Below are positions 53,373 to 64,000 of a DNA stretch of 64,000 bases, in pieces; the first letter of the stretch is position 1, and each line of letters opens with the position of its first letter. The notes under the pieces were generated by a model. That model was not told where the DNA came from, ran no database searches, and saw only the letters and a program-made list of their open reading frames with translations. The DNA is from Eutreptiella sp. 'Long Island Sound 2002' (Eukaryota > Protista > Euglenida): assembly GCA_964036045.1 (NCBI GenBank), contig OZ038379.1, forward strand, positions 2,356,001 through 2,420,000, in the 5' to 3' direction. A program made the translations under genes and the position numbers.

Positions 53373-53804
53373 ATTGGCATCTGGTCTTTCGTCAAAGCGT
53401 GGGCACATACCTCACAAAAGAGGAGTGGCACCATGTTGGCAGTCCTGACTCTGAAAATTTCAGTATCCTCGATGAATTGGAACGCTTCCGAGACACCCGT
53501 GGGAAGTTCGTCTTCAAGATGTTGTTCCCAGACATGCAGGCCCCCAACTACAATGTGTGGAGCCAAATCAGCAACCCTGTGACTGCCACAAGCGGAGGGG
53601 TCGATGGATATGCGGCGATAGAGATCCATTTTGACTCTCACCATTGGGGCGGCTTGGAGCGGTCAGCTCGGGAGACGACCCTGCTCGATGGGTCTGTGCA
53701 CGAGTATTGGTGGTTCTATGCGGTTGGAACCACTATTCCGTTCTTTGGGGGTATTCCTGGTCCATCCAAAAAGGTTGACAAAGTGGAGCTGTACGTTTGG
53801 GAAG
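53373..53804 (+). CDS. GH30 gene exon: fibrinogen-C/lectin-like domain (acceptor could also be 53307 or 53346, all phase 1)
   Basis: WHLVFRQ...NFSILDELERFR...GKFVFKMLFP...NVWSQISNP...WGGLE...LLDGS...WWFYAVG...GIPG...VELYV. Donor GAAG|gtacgt, phase 1. Confidence 0.7.
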
Positions 53805-56800
53805 GTACGTGTTGTTGGCACCGCGCGGAACCCCTGTTTTCTGGCGTCACCTGTTTGACCCTCATCCGTCAGTCGTCCTGTGCAGATCTGTTTCAGGCGT
53901 TGGGCTTTGGGATGTTGGGTGTGCGGGGCTTCCACTTGCCGAGCCTTCCAATCGTCTGTCTGGCAGTCTTGGTCTCAGCAGTCTGTGTTCGCCAGCGCGG
54001 CTCCTGATGCAACAGCCTTTGACCCTTCAGCCGCTGACCAACCTCCCATGACTCTTCACAGCCGCGGACACCGGTCCAAAGCACCGGAACGACCCCGGGA
54101 CCGTCAACGGCCGTCAACGCCCCGCGAGCTTTCACAACCCTCAACAATGCTTGACATCCCTCGACAACCGTCAACACAACTACACAATCTCACGACCTCT
54201 GACGACCTTCTGCGACCGTCTATGGCTTTTAACATCGCTCTGCAGCCCTGAGTGATCCCCCGTGGACCGCCATTCGGCTCATGCAGGGGCAAAAGTTGAG
54301 AGTCGCTGACTGTTCCTGACTGCTCTTGCGTGGTGGAAGTTGTTTGGGGTGGTTGGTGCGTTTTTGAGGATCCTCCAGGATTGCCGAGGCTTGAGCGGCC
54401 AGGACGGTTAGCGTTGTGCGGGGTTGTTGATGGTCACTGAGCGGTGGGGCAGGTTGGGTAGGATTGTGCGGTGAAGGGATTGCTGGCGTGCTTTCTGCTG
54501 CACGAAAATGGGACCCCCTTTGACACCTCAAGTGCCACAATACTACCCCTCAGTAAAACTGACAAGTGGTTGCTTCTTCGGGCCAAATTGCCCAACAACC
54601 GGCATAATGCCACAACGTTTGTTGTAAACAAGACAACCACCACCTTGTCAGAAATTGCAGACCCATTTCCTGGCTCAGCACCATCTACAGGTGCTAGCCA
54701 TGTACTCCGCCATACCTCTCACCTTCTGCTAAAATGCCACCGTCGTCTGACAGCAATTGCATCTTCGTGGTCCTTACCTTAGACCTAAGTGCCGTCTCAA
54801 GTCCCAGTCCAAGCTCCAGCACAAGCCCATCTCCAACTCCGAGTCCCAGTCCCAGTCCCAGCCCCGGTGTGTCTGCCATGTACAGTTCTGAACGGTCGCA
54901 TGGCCTTGGCATGAGCCGCGCATTTGTCCGTAACGCCACTGTACGTGCAGGGGGTGGGGGCACTTGGGCAATTGCTGTTGCTTTGAGGGACCAACTAGCA
55001 CCCGAAACTAGCAAGGCACCATCTACAACAACCATGTGGGTTGGTTGAGCTCGTAACCCGCGAGCAGCCACGCATCTCCATGAGGCACGGAGGAAATACT
55101 GGAAGCTCCCCCATCAGGGGATGCCCGTGTCCAGGTTCCAAGTACGGTTACACACAAAAGCAAAAGCAACAGAAGTACCCAACATGACACCCATACCAAA
55201 GGACACTGCGTGATCCGCCGCCCCCTGACGCCGTGTTCCATTTCGACTCTCACCATTGGGGCGGCTTGGAGCGGTCAGCTCGGGAGACGACCCTGCTCGA
55301 TGGGTCTGTGCACGAGTATTGGTGGTTCTATGCGGTTGGAACCACTATTCCGTTCTTTGGGGGTATTCCTGGTCCATCCAAAAAGGTTGACAAAGTGGAG
55401 CTGTACGTTTGGGAAGGTACGTGTTGTTGGCACCGCGCGGAACCCCTGTTTTCTGGCGTCACCTGTTTGACCCTCATCCGTCAGTCGTCCTGTGCAGATC
55501 TGTTTCAGGCGTTGGGCTTTGGGATGTTGGGTGTGCGGGGCTTCCACTTGCCGAGCCTTCCAATCGTCTGTCTGGCAGTCTTGGTCTCAGCAGTCTGTGT
55601 TCGCCAGCGCGGCTCCTGATGCAACAGCCTTTGACCCTTCAGCCGCTGACCAACCTCCCATGACTCTTCACAGCCGCGGACACCGGTCCAAAGCACCGGA
55701 ACGACCCCGGGACCGTCAACGGCCGTCAACGCCCCGCGAGCTTTCACAACCCTCAACAATGCTTGACATCCCTCGACAACCGTCAACACAACTACACAAT
55801 CTCACGACCTCTGACGACCTTCTGCGACCGTCTATGGCTTTTAACATCGCTCTGCAGCCCTGAGTGATCCCCCGTGGACCGCCATTCGGCTCATGCAGGG
55901 GCAAAAGTTGAGAGTCGCTGACTGTTCCTGACTGCTCTTGCGTGGTGGAAGTTGTTTGGGGTGGTTGGTGCGTTTTTGAGGATCCTCCAGGATTGCCGAG
56001 GCTTGAGCGGCCAGGACGGTTAGCGTTGTGCGGGGTTGTTGATGGTCACTGAGCGGTGGGGCAGGTTGGGTAGGATTGTGCGGTGAAGGGATTGCTGGCG
56101 TGCTTTCTGCTGCACGAAAATGGGACCCCCTTTGACACCTCAAGTGCCACAATACTACCCCTCAGTAAAACTGACAAGTGCTTGCTTCTTCGGGCCAAAT
56201 TGCCCAACAACCGGCATAATGCCACAACGTTTGTTGTAAACAAGACAACCACCACCTTGTCAGAAATTGCAGACCCATTTCCTGGCTCAGCACCATCTAC
56301 AGGTGCTAGCCATGTACTCCGCCATACCTCTCACCTTCTGCTAAAATGCCACCGTCGTCTGACAGCAATTGCATCTTCGTGGTCCTTACCTTAGACCTAA
56401 GTGCCGTCTCAAGTCCCAGTCCAAGCTCCAGCACAAGCCCATCTCCAACTCCGAGTCCCAGTCCCAGTCCCAGCCCCGGTGTGTCTGCCATGTACAGTTC
56501 TGAACGGTCGCATGGCCTTGGCATGAGCCGCGCATTTGTCCGTAACGCCACTGTACGTGCAGGGGGTGGGGGCACTTGGGCAATTGCTGTTGCTTTGAGG
56601 GACCAACTAGCACCCGAAACTAGCAAGGCACCATCTACAACAACCATGTGGGTTGGTTGAGCTCGTAACCCGCGAGCAGCCACGCATCTCCATGAGGCAC
56701 GGAGGAAATACTGGAAGCTCCCCCATCAGGGGATGCCCGTGTCCAGGTTCCAAGTACGGTTACACACAAAAGCAAAAGCAACAGAAGTACCCAACATGAC

Positions 56801-59800
56801 ACCCATACCAAAGGACACTGCGTGATCCGCCGCCCCCTGACGCCGTGTTCCATTTCGACTCTCACCATTGGGGCGGCTTGGAGCGGTCAGCTCGGGAGAC
56901 GACCCTGCTCGATGGGTCTGTGCACGAGTATTGGTGGTTCTATGCGGTTGGAACCACTATTCCGTTCTTTGGGGGTATTCCTGGTCCATCCAAAAAGGTT
57001 GACAAAGTGGAGCTGTACGTTTGGGAAGGTACGTGTTGTTGGCACCGCGCGGAACCCCTGTTTTCTGGCGTCACCTGTTTGACCCTCATCCGTCAGTCGT
57101 CCTGTGCAGATCTGTTTCAGGCGTTGGGCTTTGGGATGTTGGGTGTGCGGGGCTTCCACTTGCCGAGCCTTCCAATCGTCTGTCTGGCAGTCTTGGTCTC
57201 AGCAGTCTGTGTTCGCCAGCGCGGCTCCTGATGCAACAGCCTTTGACCCTTCAGCCGCTGACCAACCTCCCATGACTCTTCACAGCCGCGGACACCGGTC
57301 CAAAGCACCGGAACGACCCCGGGACCGTCAACGGCCGTCAACGCCCCGCGAGCTTTCACAACCCTCAACAATGCTTGACATCCCTCGACAACCGTCAACA
57401 CAACTACACAATCTCACGACCTCTGACGACCTTCTGCGACCGTCTATGGCTTTTAACATCGCTCTGCAGCCCTGAGTGATCCCCCGTGGACCGCCATTCG
57501 GCTCATGCAGGGGCAAAAGTTGAGAGTCGCTGACTGTTCCTGACTGCTCTTGCGTGGTGGAAGTTGTTTGGGGTGGTTGGTGCGTTTTTGAGGATCCTCC
57601 AGGATTGCCGAGGCTTGAGCGGCCAGGACGGTTAGCGTTGTGCGGGGTTGTTGATGGTCACTGAGCGGTGGGGCAGGTTGGGTAGGATTGTGCGGTGAAG
57701 GGATTGCTGGCGTGCTTTCTGCTGCACGAAAATGGGACCCCCTTTGACACCTCAAGTGCCACAATACTACCCCTCAGTAAAACTGACAAGTGCTTGCTTC
57801 TTCGGGCCAAATTGCCCAACAACCGGCATAATGCCACAACGTTTGTTGTAAACAAGACAACCACCACCTTGTCAGAAATTGCAGACCCATTTCCTGGCTC
57901 AGCACCATCTACAGGTGCTAGCCATGTACTCCGCCATACCTCTCACCTTCTGCTAAAATGCCACCGTCGTCTGACAGCAATTGCATCTTCGTGGTCCTTA
58001 CCTTAGACCTAAGTGCCGTCTCAAGTCCCAGTCCAAGCTCCAGCACAAGCCCATCTCCAACTCCGAGTCCCAGTCCCAGTCCCAGCCCCGGTGTGTCTGC
58101 CATGTACAGTTCTGAACGGTCGCATGGCCTTGGCATGAGCCGCGCATTTGTCCGTAACGCCACTGTACGTGCAGGGGGTGGGGGCACTTGGGCAATTGCT
58201 GTTGCTTTGAGGGACCAACTAGCACCCGAAACTAGCAAGGCACCATCTACAACAACCATGTGGGTTGGTTGAGCTCATAACCCGCGAGCAGCCACGCATC
58301 TCCATGAGGCACGGAGGAAATACTGGAAGCTCCCCCATCAGGGGATGCCCGTGTCCAGGTTCCAAGTACGGTTACACACAAAAGCAAAAGCAACAGAAGT
58401 ACCCAACATGACACCCATACCAAAGGACACTGCGTGATCCGCCGCCCCCTGACGCCGTGTTCCATTTCGACTCTCACCATTGGGGCGGCTTGGAGCGGTC
58501 AGCTCGGGAGACGACCCTGCTCGATGGGTCTGTGCACGAGTATTGGTGGTTCTATGCGGTTGGAACCACTATTCCGTTCTTTGGGGGTATTCCTGGTCCA
58601 TCCAAAAAGGTTGACAAAGTGGAGCTGTACGTTTGGGAAGGTACGTGTTGTTGGCACCGCGCGGAACCCCTGTTTTCTGGCGTCACCTGTTTGACCCTCA
58701 TCCGTCAGTCGTCCTGTGCAGATCTGTTTCAGGCGTTGGGCTTTGGGATGTTGGGTGTGCGGGGCTTCCACTTGCCGAGCCTTCCAATCGTCTGTCTGGC
58801 AGTCTTGGTCTCAGCAGTCTGTGTTCGCCAGCGCGGCTCCTGATGCAACAGCCTTTGACCCTTCAGCCGCTGACCAACCTCCCATGACTCTTCACAGCCG
58901 CGGACACCGGTCCAAAGCACCGGAACGACCCCGGGACTGTCAACGGCCGTCAACGCCCCGCGAGCTTTCACAACCCTCAACAATGCTTGACATCCCTCGA
59001 CAACCGTCAACACAACTACACAATCTCACGACCTCTGACGACCTTCTGCGACCGTCTATGGCTTTTGACATCGCTCTGCAGCCCTGAGTGATCCCCCGTG
59101 GACCGCCATTCGGCTCATGCAGGGGCAAAAGTTGAGAGTCGCTGACTGTTCCTGACTGCTCTTGCGTGGTGGAAGTTGTTTGGGGTGGTTGGTGCGTTTT
59201 TGAGGATCCTCCAGGATTGCCGAGGCTTGAGCGGCCAGGACGGTTAGCGTTGTGCGGGGTTGTTGATGGTCACTGAGCGGTGGGGCAGGTTGGATAGGAT
59301 TGTGCGGTGAAGGGATTGCTGGCGTGCTTTCTGCTGCACGAAAATGGGACCCCCTTTGACACCTCAAGTGCCACAATACTACCCCTCGGTAAAACTGACA
59401 AGTGCTTGCTTCTTCGGGCCAAATTGCCCAACAACCGGCATAATGCCACAACGTTTGTTGTAAACAAGACAACCACCACCTTGTCAGAAATTGCAGACCC
59501 ATTTCCTGGCTCAGCACCATCTACAGGTGCTAGCCATGTATCTCTCACCTTCTGCTAAAATGCCACCGTTGTCTGACAGCAATTGCATCTTCGTGGCCCT
59601 TACCTTAGACCTAAGTGCCGTCTCAAGTCCCAGTCCAAGCTCCAGCACAAGCCCATCTCCAACTCCGAGTCCCAGTCCCAGTCCCAGCCCCGGTGTGTCT
59701 GCCATGTACAGTTCTGAACGGTCGCATGGCCTTGGCATGAGCCGCGCATTTGTCCGTAACGCCACTGTACGTGCAGGGGGTGGGGGCACTTGGGCAATTG

Positions 59801-61352
59801 CTGTTGCTTTGAGGGACCAACTAGCACCCGAAACTAGCAAGGCACCATCTACAACAACCATGTGGGTTGGTTGAGCTCATAACCCGCGAGCAGCCACGCA
59901 TCTCCATGAGGCACGGAGGAAATACTGGAAGCTCCCCCATCAGGGGATGCCCGTGTCCAGGTTCCAAGTACGGTTACACACAAAAGCAAAAGCAACAGAA
60001 GTACCCAACATGACACCCATACCAAAGGACACTGCGTGATCCGCCGCCCCCTGACGCCGTGTTCCATTTCGACTCTCACCATTGGGGCGGCTTGGAGCGG
60101 TCAGCTCGGGAGACGACCCTGCTCGATGGGTCTGTGCACGAGTATTGGTGGTTCTATGCGGTTGGAACCACTATTCCGTTCTTTGGGGGTATTCCTGGTC
60201 CATCCAAAAAGGTTGACAAAGTGGAGCTGTACGTTTGGGAAGGTACGTGTTGTTGGCACCGCGCGGAACCCCTGTTTTCTGGCGTCACCTGTTTGACCCT
60301 CATCCGTCAGTCGTCCTGTGCAGATCTGTTTCAGGCGTTGGGCTTTGGGATGTTGGGTGTGCGGGGCTTCCACTTGCCGAGCCTTCCAATCGTCTGTCTG
60401 GCAGTCTTGGTCTCAGCAGTCTGTGTTCGCCAGCGCGGCTCCTGATGCAACAGCCTTTGACCCTTCAGCCGCTGACCAACCTCCCATGACTCTTCACAGC
60501 CGCGGACACCGGTCAAAAGCACCGGAACGACCCCGGGACTGTCAACGGCCGTAACGCCCCGCGAGCTTTCACAACCCTCAACAATGCTTGACATCCCTCG
60601 ACAACCGTCAACACAACTACACAATCTCACGACCTCTGACGACCTTCTGCGACCGTCTACAGGGGGGGGGGAAAACTTCGCCAGGGGAGAATTTCGCGGG
60701 GAAAATTTCGCCGTTAAGAAAGGTGGCGAAATTTTCCCCTGGCGAAATTTTGGCGTAACAGTTCCATCCTTCACCACAGCTGCAGGCATTGTGTTTCGTG
60801 CGCAGGGCCAGGCGCAATTACGAACCTGCCTGTGCCAACCATTTGCTGCGCAGATGCATGAATCTGACAATCGGGTATCTGGTGTTGGAGCTGTCGGCTT
60901 CTTTTTCAAGGCATCAACAGTCCTGAATGGTGACGTAGGTTTACCTCTCTCTTCAGCCTCCTCAACACTGAAGGGGGGGAGGCAGGTAAATGACTGCAGG
61001 AGTGGGCGGAACATCATCAACACTTTCGGCTTCGGGTACAACATCCTTTTGACAGCATGATCATGATGAATGCTTGGATGCATAAACTGTTGCGGCAGGG
61101 AAGGGAACACATTCTGCACATTAGGATACTCATAAGTTCCCTTTTGCTCTGCAAAGTACTTCAGGGGCGTTTCGTCGAATGCCAGCCTAGTATCCAGAAG
61201 AAATATGTCGCATCCAAAGCACTTGATCCACGTGGCTGCAGTTTCCTCCGGTGTTAGTCGCAGTGTGCTACGTGCTTTTTGTCTTTCGGTGGCAGTGTGG
61301 ATGCAATCCTTTGTACCCCTTGCACGTGCTGTCTGTTTTTGACAGCTTTTCC

Positions 61353-61811
61353 ATGGACAAATTTGTCATCCGCAAAAGTGCATCCCAAAGTGCTGTGGAT
61401 GGTCTCGTTGACAATTTGAAGGAGTTTGCATCCACATTGCCACCGAAAGAAAAAAAGCGCAAAGGGTACAATTCAAAACCATGGGCAAACTGGGACCAAC
61501 AACAACGTGAGGATGCTGCATTACTTTATCTTCGTAAAAAGATGGACGGTTGCAAGCTCCAGTATGGTGCATCATGTCCCCCACGTAGCACACTACGAGA
61601 CTGGGCAGATAAGTATGCAATGCAAGGCAAAGTGAACCCCATGGGACGTCCACCGAAGCTAACACCGGAGGAAACTGCAGCCGTGGCGAAGTATTTCTCT
61701 GGAACGCGGTCTGAGGGTGCTGTCATTGACGCCGAGGCACTTCTTGTCATGGCAAAACACGTTTTGAAAACAGCGCGGGGGCTTAATTATGATACCTTCC
61801 ATCGTGGGTAA
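61353..61811 (+). CDS. pogo-like transposase N-terminus (psq-like HTH and CENP-B-type HTH), truncated
   Basis: MDKFVIRK...PPRSTLRDW...GRPPKLTPEETAAV...GAVIDAEALLVMAKHV. No DDE domain follows. Confidence 0.7.
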   Translation: MDKFVIRKSASQSAVDGLVDNLKEFASTLPPKEKKRKGYNSKPWANWDQQQREDAALLYLRKKMDGCKLQYGASCPPRSTLRDWADKYAMQGKVNPMGRPPKLTPEETAAVAKYFSGTRSEGAVIDAEALLVMAKHVLKTARGLNYDTFHRG

Positions 61812-61911
61812 AGGCTTCGTGGCGTAAGGCTTTGGATGTTGTACCCGAAGCCGAAAGTGTTGATGATGTTCCGCCCGCCCCTCCAGTCATTTACCTGCCC
61901 CCCCCCCTTCA

Positions 61912-62598
61912 GTGTTGCAGGATGATACATCTCAGGATGCCCCAGCGGAACAGCCTGAGGAGGCTGCCGAGAGAGTGGTTGTTCATGAGGCCTGGCTCCC
62001 CACTCAAAAGCGCAAACGTGCGCGCCAGCCTGAGGCTCGGGTGGCATTGGAGGAACGGGCGCGGAAACGAACAAAAGCTTCTCAGTCAGCCTCTGCTCCT
62101 GTTTCTGTCTCTAGTGGTGCGTCAGCATCACGCAGAAGTGACAGTGACAGTGACAGTGACAGTGACGGTGACAGTGATAGTCACAGTGACACTGATAGTG
62201 AGCGCACCAGTGGCAGTGGCAGTGGCAGTGACAGTGACAGTGACCCTCCTGCCACTGTCAACAAACCAAAGGCCACAGTTGATGCCCCGATTTTCGCTGC
62301 AACCAAGGCAGCTGCTGGTGCTGTTGTAAAACCCAAGGCTGATCTTGTGAATTTTTTGCAACAGCTTGGGTATTCACAGTATGCAGTGCCACTTGCAGCT
62401 GCTGGATTTGCATGCATGAAAGAGCTCACTCTTATTAATATGGCAGCACTTAAAAAATGTGGTGTCCTGGATGGCCATGCATTAAGGATTGTTGATGCCT
62501 TGAAAAAGAAGCCTGCACCTTCTGCACCAGTTACTGGATCGTCTGCACCAGATTTCATGAAGCTGCGCAAGAAACGGTTGGCTCAGGCGCGTTCGTAG
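61912..62598 (+). CDS. Acidic/Ser-rich region plus C-terminal SAM domain carried by the transposon
   Basis: LVNFLQQLGYSQYAVPLAAAGFACMKELTLINMAALKKCGVLDGHALRIVDALKK fits the sterile alpha motif pattern. It probably extends upstream to about 61793 across a poly-C slip. Confidence 0.7.
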   Translation: MLQDDTSQDAPAEQPEEAAERVVVHEAWLPTQKRKRARQPEARVALEERARKRTKASQSASAPVSVSSGASASRRSDSDSDSDSDGDSDSHSDTDSERTSGSGSGSDSDSDPPATVNKPKATVDAPIFAATKAAAGAVVKPKADLVNFLQQLGYSQYAVPLAAAGFACMKELTLINMAALKKCGVLDGHALRIVDALKKKPAPSAPVTGSSAPDFMKLRKKRLAQARS

Positions 62599-64000
62599 GC
62601 GCGCCTGGCTCCTCTTGGAAAACACAATTCTGGGACCATGTTGTGCCAGCCTGTTGCAGTTTTGGACCCCCTGTGTAGTGCATGTGTTGTTGTTTTGTGA
62701 CCATTGGAGACTGCTTCAGGCAGGGTTTGTTTGTGCATGAAAAACCAATCTCATCAGATTCACATCACTGTGGTTTGAACCAACGCCTGTGCCATCAGAA
62801 CCAAGTGCATGTACCACTGGAGTAATGACCAGATCTGGCATCTAGGTCCTCAAGGGGCATATAAAGACCGAGAGACAAAATTTTTTTTTTGAAAATCGAG
62901 AGACATTTTGCGAGACACATGCTTGCTTGGGGCTTTGGGGATTTCAAGGGTGGCGAAATTTTCCCCTGGCGAAATTTTCCCCTGCGAAATTGTCCCCGGG
63001 CGAAGTTTTCCCCCCCCCCTGTATGGCTTTTAACATCGCTCTGCAGCCCTGAGTGATCCCCCGTGGACCGCCATTCGGCTCATGCAGGGGCAAAAGTTGA
63101 GAGTCGCTGACTGTTCCTGACTGCTCTTGCGTGGTGGAAGTTGTTTGGGGTGGTTGGTGCGTTTTTGAGGATCCTCCAGGATTGCCGAGGCTTGAGCGGC
63201 CAGGACGGTTAGCGTTGTGCGGAGTTGTTGATGGTCACTGAGCGGTGGGGCAGGTTGGATAGGATTGTGCGGTGAAGGGATTGCTGGCGTGCTTTCTGCT
63301 GCACGAAAATGGGACCCCCTTTGACACCTCAAGTGCCACAATACTACCCCTCGGTAAAACTGACAAGTGGTTGCTTCTTCGGGCCAAATTGCCCAACAAC
63401 CGGCATAATGCCACAACGTTTGTTGTAAACAAGACAACCACCACCTTGTCAGAAATTGCAGACCCATTTCCTGGCTCAGCACCATCTACAGGTGCTAGCC
63501 ATGTATCTCTCACCTTCTGCTAAAATGCCACCGTCGTCTGACAGCAATTGCATCTTCGTGGTCCTTACCTTAGACCTAAGTGCCGTCTCAAGTCCCAGTC
63601 CAAGCTCCAGCACAAGCCCATCTCCAACTCCGAGTCCCAGTCCCAGTCCCAGCCCCGGTGTGTCTGCCATGTACAGTTCTGAACGGTCGCATGGCCTTGG
63701 CATGAGCCGCGCATTTGTCCGTAACGCCACTGTACGTGCAGGGGGTGGGGGCACTTGGGCAATTGCTGTTGCTTTGAGGGACCAACTAGCACCCGAAACT
63801 AGCAAGGCACCATCTACAACAACCATGTGGGTTGGTTGAGCTCGTAACCCGCGAGCAGCCACGCATCTCCATGAGGCACGGAGGAAATACTGGAAGCTCC
63901 CCCATCAGGGGATGCCCGTGTCCAGGTTCCAAGTACGGTTACACACAAAAGCAAAAGCAACAGAAGTACCCAACATGACACCCATACCAAAGGACACTGC

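Follow-up and report, generated by a model that had tools for sequence, protein, structure and literature searches.

A probable pogo-like transposon family with a SAM-ended transposase in the euglenid Eutreptiella

Transposases of the Tc1/mariner/pogo type act as dimers or tetramers, and to our knowledge the way in which they assemble on their ends is known for a few animal elements only. A locus in the euglenid Eutreptiella sp. 'Long Island Sound 2002' raises the question of whether a transposase of this kind can carry, as a part of the enzyme, a sterile alpha motif (SAM) domain at its C-terminus, and what such a domain would do there. The locus lies in a stretch of 64,000 nucleotides (contig OZ038379.1, positions 2,356,001 to 2,420,000 of the forward strand), referred to here as the window and numbered from its first letter, in which an element of 2362 bp occupies positions 60660-63021. 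This element, a non-autonomous copy with an internal deletion, belongs to a young DNA transposon that is present in many copies and duplicates TA when it inserts. An earlier reading of the window alone (the original prediction) had proposed a parent transposase in which helix-turn-helix (HTH) domains, a DDE catalytic core, an acidic tract and a SAM domain follow one another. Longer copies found in the 2.28-Gb chromosome-scale assembly of the genome, where the window corresponds to C2:2356001-2420000, bear out this arrangement, and we consider it likely that the family is a divergent pogo-like (DDD) lineage of the IS630/Tc1/mariner superfamily whose autonomous protein ends in a SAM domain.

The copies that carry this conclusion belong to three subfamilies. 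In the subfamily of the window copy (A), a single 526-amino acid (aa) frame in L038 (on C3), where the run of cytosines is interrupted, extends from the first catalytic Asp to the stop and takes in the linker and the SAM domain. In subfamily B, L068, flanked by TA and with the same CAG-poly-G termini as the window copy, is 3002 bp long, and its single intact open reading frame (ORF) of 711 aa contains all the parts; in subfamily C all the parts are likewise present in the intact, single 749-aa ORF of L072. The DDE core and the SAM domain are thus found in one frame in each of these three copies, and the same readthrough from core to tail is seen in P0002 and P0004. As deduced from these sequences, the autonomous form is predicted to be one protein with a conserved N-terminus, two HTH regions, an RNase-H-like DDD core, a SVDDVPPP/Pro-run motif and an acidic patch, followed by a KRKRAR motif, probably a nuclear localisation signal, and then by a low-complexity Ser/Ala/Asp linker, the SAM domain and a short basic tail. 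For the parent, no intron has to be assumed.

L031 (on C14), the longest copy in the window's subfamily, carries the HTH regions together with an entire core in a 528-aa ORF, and its tail lies in another frame. Such offsets between core and tail are due to a hypervariable poly-C run, which measured 10 Cs in two, 11 in three, 12 in two and 13 in three of ten junction sequences (12 in L031), and of these lengths only 11 keeps the tail in frame. Among near-identical copies (the window copy, with its run at 61898-61907, and L031, L032, L041, L044, L045, L049, L050 and L015) this Pro-encoding run varies between 10 and 13 Cs and so switches the SAM tail in and out of frame, a variation that may be genuine homopolymer instability or an assembly error. 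An intron joining the parental core and tail, from TGG/gtaaag (61808) to ttgcag/GAT (61920) and in phase 0 on both sides, was also considered and was rejected because the stretch in question is conserved coding sequence, read through in L038, L068, L072, P0002 and P0004; it would moreover be superfluous, since the length of the poly-C run explains the frame offsets.

The identity of the C-terminal domain was well supported. The Pfam family SAM_1 (cut-off 23 bits) matched the tail with 30.6 bits in subfamily A (the window copy), 32.6 in B (L068) and 24.6 in C (L072), and with 36.2 bits in P0009. The model of the L068 C-terminus is a five-helix bundle with a predicted local distance difference test value (pLDDT) of about 90, and nearly all of the PDB matches listed for it by Foldseek are SAM domains (probability 0.97-1.0), the best of them, led by Tric1 and EphB2, showing template modelling (TM) scores of 0.75-0.85, root-mean-square deviations of 1-1.5 Å and 30-36% identity. 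When the three subfamilies, represented by L038, L068 and L072, were compared with one another, the SAM domain showed 58-65% aa identity without gaps (nonsynonymous divergence, dN, 0.26-0.40), the catalytic core 54-64% with few gaps (dN 0.32-0.43) and the linker 32-41% with many gaps (dN 0.66-0.85), synonymous sites being saturated in this comparison. Judged by these values, the SAM domain is an old, selected part of the enzyme that is constrained like the core. The tail could instead have been a host fragment captured once, or a separate second gene, lying outside the transposase, and the fact that its frame differs from that of the core in both the window copy and L031 could be taken in that sense. 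However, the frame difference on which that explanation relies is a matter of poly-C run length, the core and the SAM domain share one frame in L038, L068, L072 and P0004, and the domain has been conserved in three subfamilies whose cores share only 54-64% identity, so that we find a one-off capture scarcely credible.

The placement of the family next to pogo is based on the TA duplication, a Tc5-type HTH domain, the DDD triad, the fold of the core and a link through the protein P0145. The family profile matches P0145 with an E value of 2.8e-11, and P0145 in turn contains DDE_1 (35.1 bits, cut-off 22). The motifs DET, DN(V)xSH and SGD are conserved in the family and align with LDETS, LDCAGSH and QPLD of P0145, with substitutions of the second Asp in the subfamily of L056 and P0002 (IGN for IDN) and of the first in the deletion copy P0001 (EET for DET). 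HTH_Tnp_Tc5 is matched above its cut-off of 22.2 bits in subfamily C (L072, 23.8 bits) and below it in subfamily A (14.7 bits), P0016 and P0019. The core model (AlphaFold2, pLDDT 86.8) is closest to SETMAR and Mos1, with Z scores of 12.3-13.3 over 175-199 residues, followed by Sleeping Beauty (Z 10.9) and by retroviral integrases (Z at most 9), and the neighbours of the family in a protein atlas are nearly all DDE_1 clusters. Subfamilies B and C have a spacing of 42 residues from the second to the third Asp and subfamily A one of 46, values at or beyond the upper limit of the range reported for pogo. The stretch from the first to the second catalytic Asp contains an insert peculiar to this family, with the nearly invariant motifs FQIIWKG, CHP and HHDHAxKKTQ (residues ~270-320 of the L068 ORF); this insert, absent from canonical pogo, may be a metal-binding or DNA-contact element.

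Several observations weigh against the reading of the family as a pogo-like lineage with a SAM-ended transposase. Pfam DDE_1 does not match the family directly, even at E values up to 1, and a profile search of 1.84 billion proteins gave 384 relatives, mostly short fragments, which indicates that the lineage is isolated in sequence and that its placement rests on the transitive link together with fold and architecture. In the window's own subfamily no copy was found that is both full-length and fully intact: L031 has the poly-C frameshift and worn ends, and L038 is without the 5' part. P0005 and P0155, relatives from other organisms, show no SAM domain, so the domain is not universal in the lineage and was gained within it; neither protein is encoded in the genome analyzed here, where the closest matches are 44% and 35% identical, respectively. 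Finally, SAM domains are also capable of binding RNA or other SAM proteins. A PDB sequence search with the core-tail-SAM ORF of L038 returned matches only to the SAM and low-complexity parts, a PDB profile search with the N-terminal half, which comprises the HTH regions and a portion of the core, gave nothing meaningful and did not reach CENP-B, a metagenome scan for relatives found none, and a second word search retrieved only proteins of this same genome.

The mobility of the family is apparent from its insertion sites. The window copy occupies one unit of a host tandem array of at least six units, and its two flanks, joined through a single TA, are found uninterrupted at 54221, 55833, 57445 and 59057, that is, in four empty-site copies at 1612-bp spacing within the window, against 0 such matches expected by chance. 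The clean, TA-duplicating insertion described in the original prediction is therefore confirmed, and TA duplications likewise border four further family insertions at other sites of the genome. The assembly contains no fewer than 345 matching fragments, up to 100% identical and many of them 96-100% identical, which indicates a young family. Regarding the ends, inverted-repeat arms of 51 nt (60658-60708 and 62973-63023) with 90% complementarity were detected; since these take in the flanking TA, the terminal inverted repeat (TIR) proper measures 49 nt. The CAG-poly-G terminus of the window copy is also present in subfamilies B and C. Each end of the window copy also contains four copies of a 15-nt motif, and all 8 matches to this motif in the window fall within the two ends of the element, against 0.23 expected.

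The presence of several sites per end, along with a C-terminal module that could mediate oligomerisation, suggests cooperative loading and pairing of the ends as the purpose of the domain. In this scheme the SAM domain would make the transposase self-associate, a step for and against which we judge the chances to be about even; self-association would help cooperative loading on the four candidate 15-nt sites of each end, and SAM-SAM contacts would pair the two ends of the element. The succession of HTH domains, core, acidic tract and a small self-association domain recalls, by analogy, the layout of CENP-B, in which an acidic tract and a C-terminal dimerisation domain come after a pogo-derived core. 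In both, the parts follow the same order, from HTH DNA-binding domains through a pogo-type core and an acidic tract to a small helical domain at the C-terminus, and there is a weak Pfam match of CENP-B_dimeris over the acidic part of the family protein (E 0.41). They differ in that CENP-B is encoded by a single, domesticated host gene, its core is inactive and its dimerisation domain is not a SAM domain, whereas the element described here is mobile and its triad is intact. A serious alternative, which we consider possible if somewhat doubtful, is that the SAM domain binds SAM domains of host proteins instead of other transposase molecules, and would in this way tether the transposase to chromatin or pick targets. 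Heterotypic SAM-SAM complexes, such as EphA5/SAMD5 and EphA2/SHIP2, are indeed among the closest structural matches, but no target preference beyond TA was seen in the family insertions checked, and the repeated 15-nt sites at each end fit self-association at least equally well. A family that has long retained a protein-interaction module and has several sites per end provides a natural test of the control that oligomerisation exerts over cut-and-paste transposition.

A further peculiarity of the family concerns the leader that separates the left TIR from the ATG. In all three subfamilies this leader (~600-880 bp) consists of 4-10 blocks, which repeat in reverse complement parts of the ORF and the 3' end of the element itself. 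These blocks measure 20-160 nt, are 71-100% identical to their ORF partners and are collinear from the 3' end of the gene to its 5' end. They overlap between subfamilies, the region of the first catalytic Asp being included in all three, and their boundaries differ. The match of a leader to its own ORF is far closer than that among the ORFs themselves (~55-60% nucleotide identity). This points either to an inverted duplication of old date, which gene conversion has kept alike and which has eroded separately, or to repeated origins. Selection at the RNA level on pairing between leader and ORF was considered and rejected for lack of signal, as the mismatches comprise 39 G-U and 32 A-C pairs along with 83 transversions. 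The leader has a bearing on another role for the C-terminal domain, that of an RNA-binding module as in Smaug and Vts1, acting for instance on the structured leader of the element. The leader of the mRNA is able to pair with the coding region, and the leading structural match of the SAM model is the SAM domain of Tric1, a protein linked to the transport of tRNA. On the other hand, Smaug and Vts1 are absent among the matches listed for the model, and the mismatches just described, with no excess of G-U over A-C and many transversions, speak against it, so that RNA binding is very unlikely. Returning to self-association, a broader picture can be drawn of a euglenid pogo-like lineage in which the SAM domain would be an obligatory oligomerisation domain matched to the four-site arrays, and the antisense-mirror leader, compressed and held close to the coding sequence within each subfamily, possibly an RNA-interference hairpin that would limit copy number; taken as a whole, we regard this picture as rather improbable. 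The mirrored leader raises the question of concerted evolution or self-regulation in DNA transposons.

When compared with pogo and Tigger elements, which combine DDE_1 with HTH_Tnp_Tc5, the family shares the TA duplication, short TIRs, two N-terminal HTH regions, the DDD triad, an RNase-H-like core whose nearest structures are of the mariner type and an acidic region towards the C-terminus. It differs from them in being too divergent for Pfam DDE_1, in the spacing between the second and third Asp mentioned above, in the FQIIWKG...HHDHAxKKTQ insert, in the C-terminal SAM domain, in having four 15-nt sites per end and in the leader that mirrors the coding sequence. In proteins such as SETMAR, POGK and POGZ, too, a transposase of the Tc1/mariner or pogo type is fused with a module for protein interaction or chromatin; these are, however, host-gene fusions that arose after domestication, whereas here the SAM domain is part of the mobile element itself and has persisted while its subfamilies diversified. 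Full-text literature searches gave no description of a SAM-bearing transposase of the DDE/pogo type, and the SAM domain is thus an addition to this class of transposons for which we found no published report.

The features of the window copy are collected in Table 1. Other copies align to positions 1-1121 and 1137-2362 of the element, with up to 926 bp of extra sequence between them, and the window copy therefore has an internal deletion, at 61780/61796, through which the catalytic core has largely been lost and the frame has shifted. This junction was found in no other copy. The truncated ORF, with its ATG at 61353 and its stop at 61809-61811, is collinear with residues 35-211 of the 528-aa ORF of L031, and its HTH gives a weak Pfam match (HTH_32, E 0.22). 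The sequence LPSWVKASWRKAL at about 61793, which had been likened to the end of a DDE domain, is, by comparison with full-length copies, the true C-terminus of the catalytic region, except that its leading Y comes from the filler at the junction. Its poly-C run counts 10 Cs. The three remaining coding pieces lie in three different frames, and the copy can thus make at most a 152-aa HTH stub. It is a dead derivative without special importance of its own.

Table 1. Positions of the features of the element and its surroundings in the window, and of the mirrored leader in other copies.
Feature	Position	Strand	Remarks
Host tandem array	53620..64000	.	At least six units of 1612 bp, at least 99% identical; received the insertion
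Left TA target-site duplication	60658..60659	.	Single TA between the same flanks in four empty sites
Left TIR	60660..60708	+	Starts CAG, then ten G; inverted pair I4
Left array	60668..60739	.	Four copies of the 15-nt motif (GGCGAAATTTTCCCC and variants), candidate transposase-binding sites
5' leader	60788..61306	-	Reverse-complement blocks of own coding and 3' sequence; pairs I1-I3, I6, I7, I11
Truncated transposase ORF	61353..61811	+	MDKFVIRKS N-terminus and two HTH regions; from the ORF list; stop soon after the deletion junction
Filler at deletion junction	61781..61795	+	15 nt; ~930 bp of catalytic core missing relative to longer copies
Remnant of catalytic-region end	61796..61911	+	LPSWVKASWRKAL...SVDDVPP...Pro run; alignment with full-length copies
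C-terminal tail, open frame	61912..62598	+	Acidic patch, KRKRAR, Ser/Asp tract, SAM, basic end; ORF list, Pfam, subfamily alignment
KRKRAR basic motif	62008-62025	+	Within tail frame
Ser/Asp tract	62137-62256	+	Within tail frame
SAM (sterile alpha motif) domain	62332..62508	+	Pfam SAM_1, E 4.3e-7, 30.6 bits (cut-off 23)
3' untranslated part	62599..62951	+	No conserved ORF; partly mirrored in the leader (pair I2)
Right array	62952..63013	.	Four copies of the 15-nt motif
Right TIR	62973..63021	-	Inverted pair I4
Right TA target-site duplication	63022..63023	.	Single TA between the same flanks in four empty sites
Mirrored leader in other copies	L068:3709-4121; L072:192-675; L031, upstream of the 528-aa ORF

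The original prediction had also suggested that this deletion derivative might produce an HTH-SAM repressor-like protein, through a splice from C/gtgggt (61804) to ttcag/TG (61912). Exon 1 would then run to 61803, leaving a single codon base in the HTH frame, with exon 2 beginning at 61913, and the phases are indeed compatible, in the shifted HTH frame of this copy and in this copy only. Truncated transposases inhibit transposition in other systems, the KP repressor of the P element being an example. The splice itself was not supported, as the supposed intron corresponds in the parents to conserved coding sequence (the SVDDVPPP motif and the Pro run) that is read straight through. In addition, the donor C/GTGGGT is weak, the SAM frame has no start codon upstream of the middle of the domain, and the abundant short derivatives of the family keep neither an HTH-SAM nor a SAM-only frame. 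Since the deletion junction exists in the window copy alone, selection for an HTH-SAM product cannot be shown. All in all, we hold the production of such a repressor to be highly improbable. In-frame deletion products do exist in the family, as illustrated by L006, whose deletion junction is identical to that of the database protein P0001, but they keep only the last helix of the SAM domain.

Among the short derivatives, the most amplified, of ~1.63 kb (L020-L028 and L030; for example C15:8811677-8813306) is present in at least 10 copies that are 96-98% alike, an amplification resembling that of miniature inverted-repeat transposable elements. The possibility that it encodes a SAM-only protein from the native ATG was rejected, given that a stop follows after 9 codons in 10 of the 10 copies checked. 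Its leader keeps extra inverted blocks that have been lost from the window copy.

A large, related pogo-like family was also noticed in the genome. A search for chromodomains (PF00385), in which 150 of 28,654 candidates were scored, gave none that coincided with these relatives, which comprise many intact 614-aa frames about 34-36% identical to P0155 and P0005 (for example, C19:8763682-8765118, C14:29863353-29864801 and C8:63672062-63673453).

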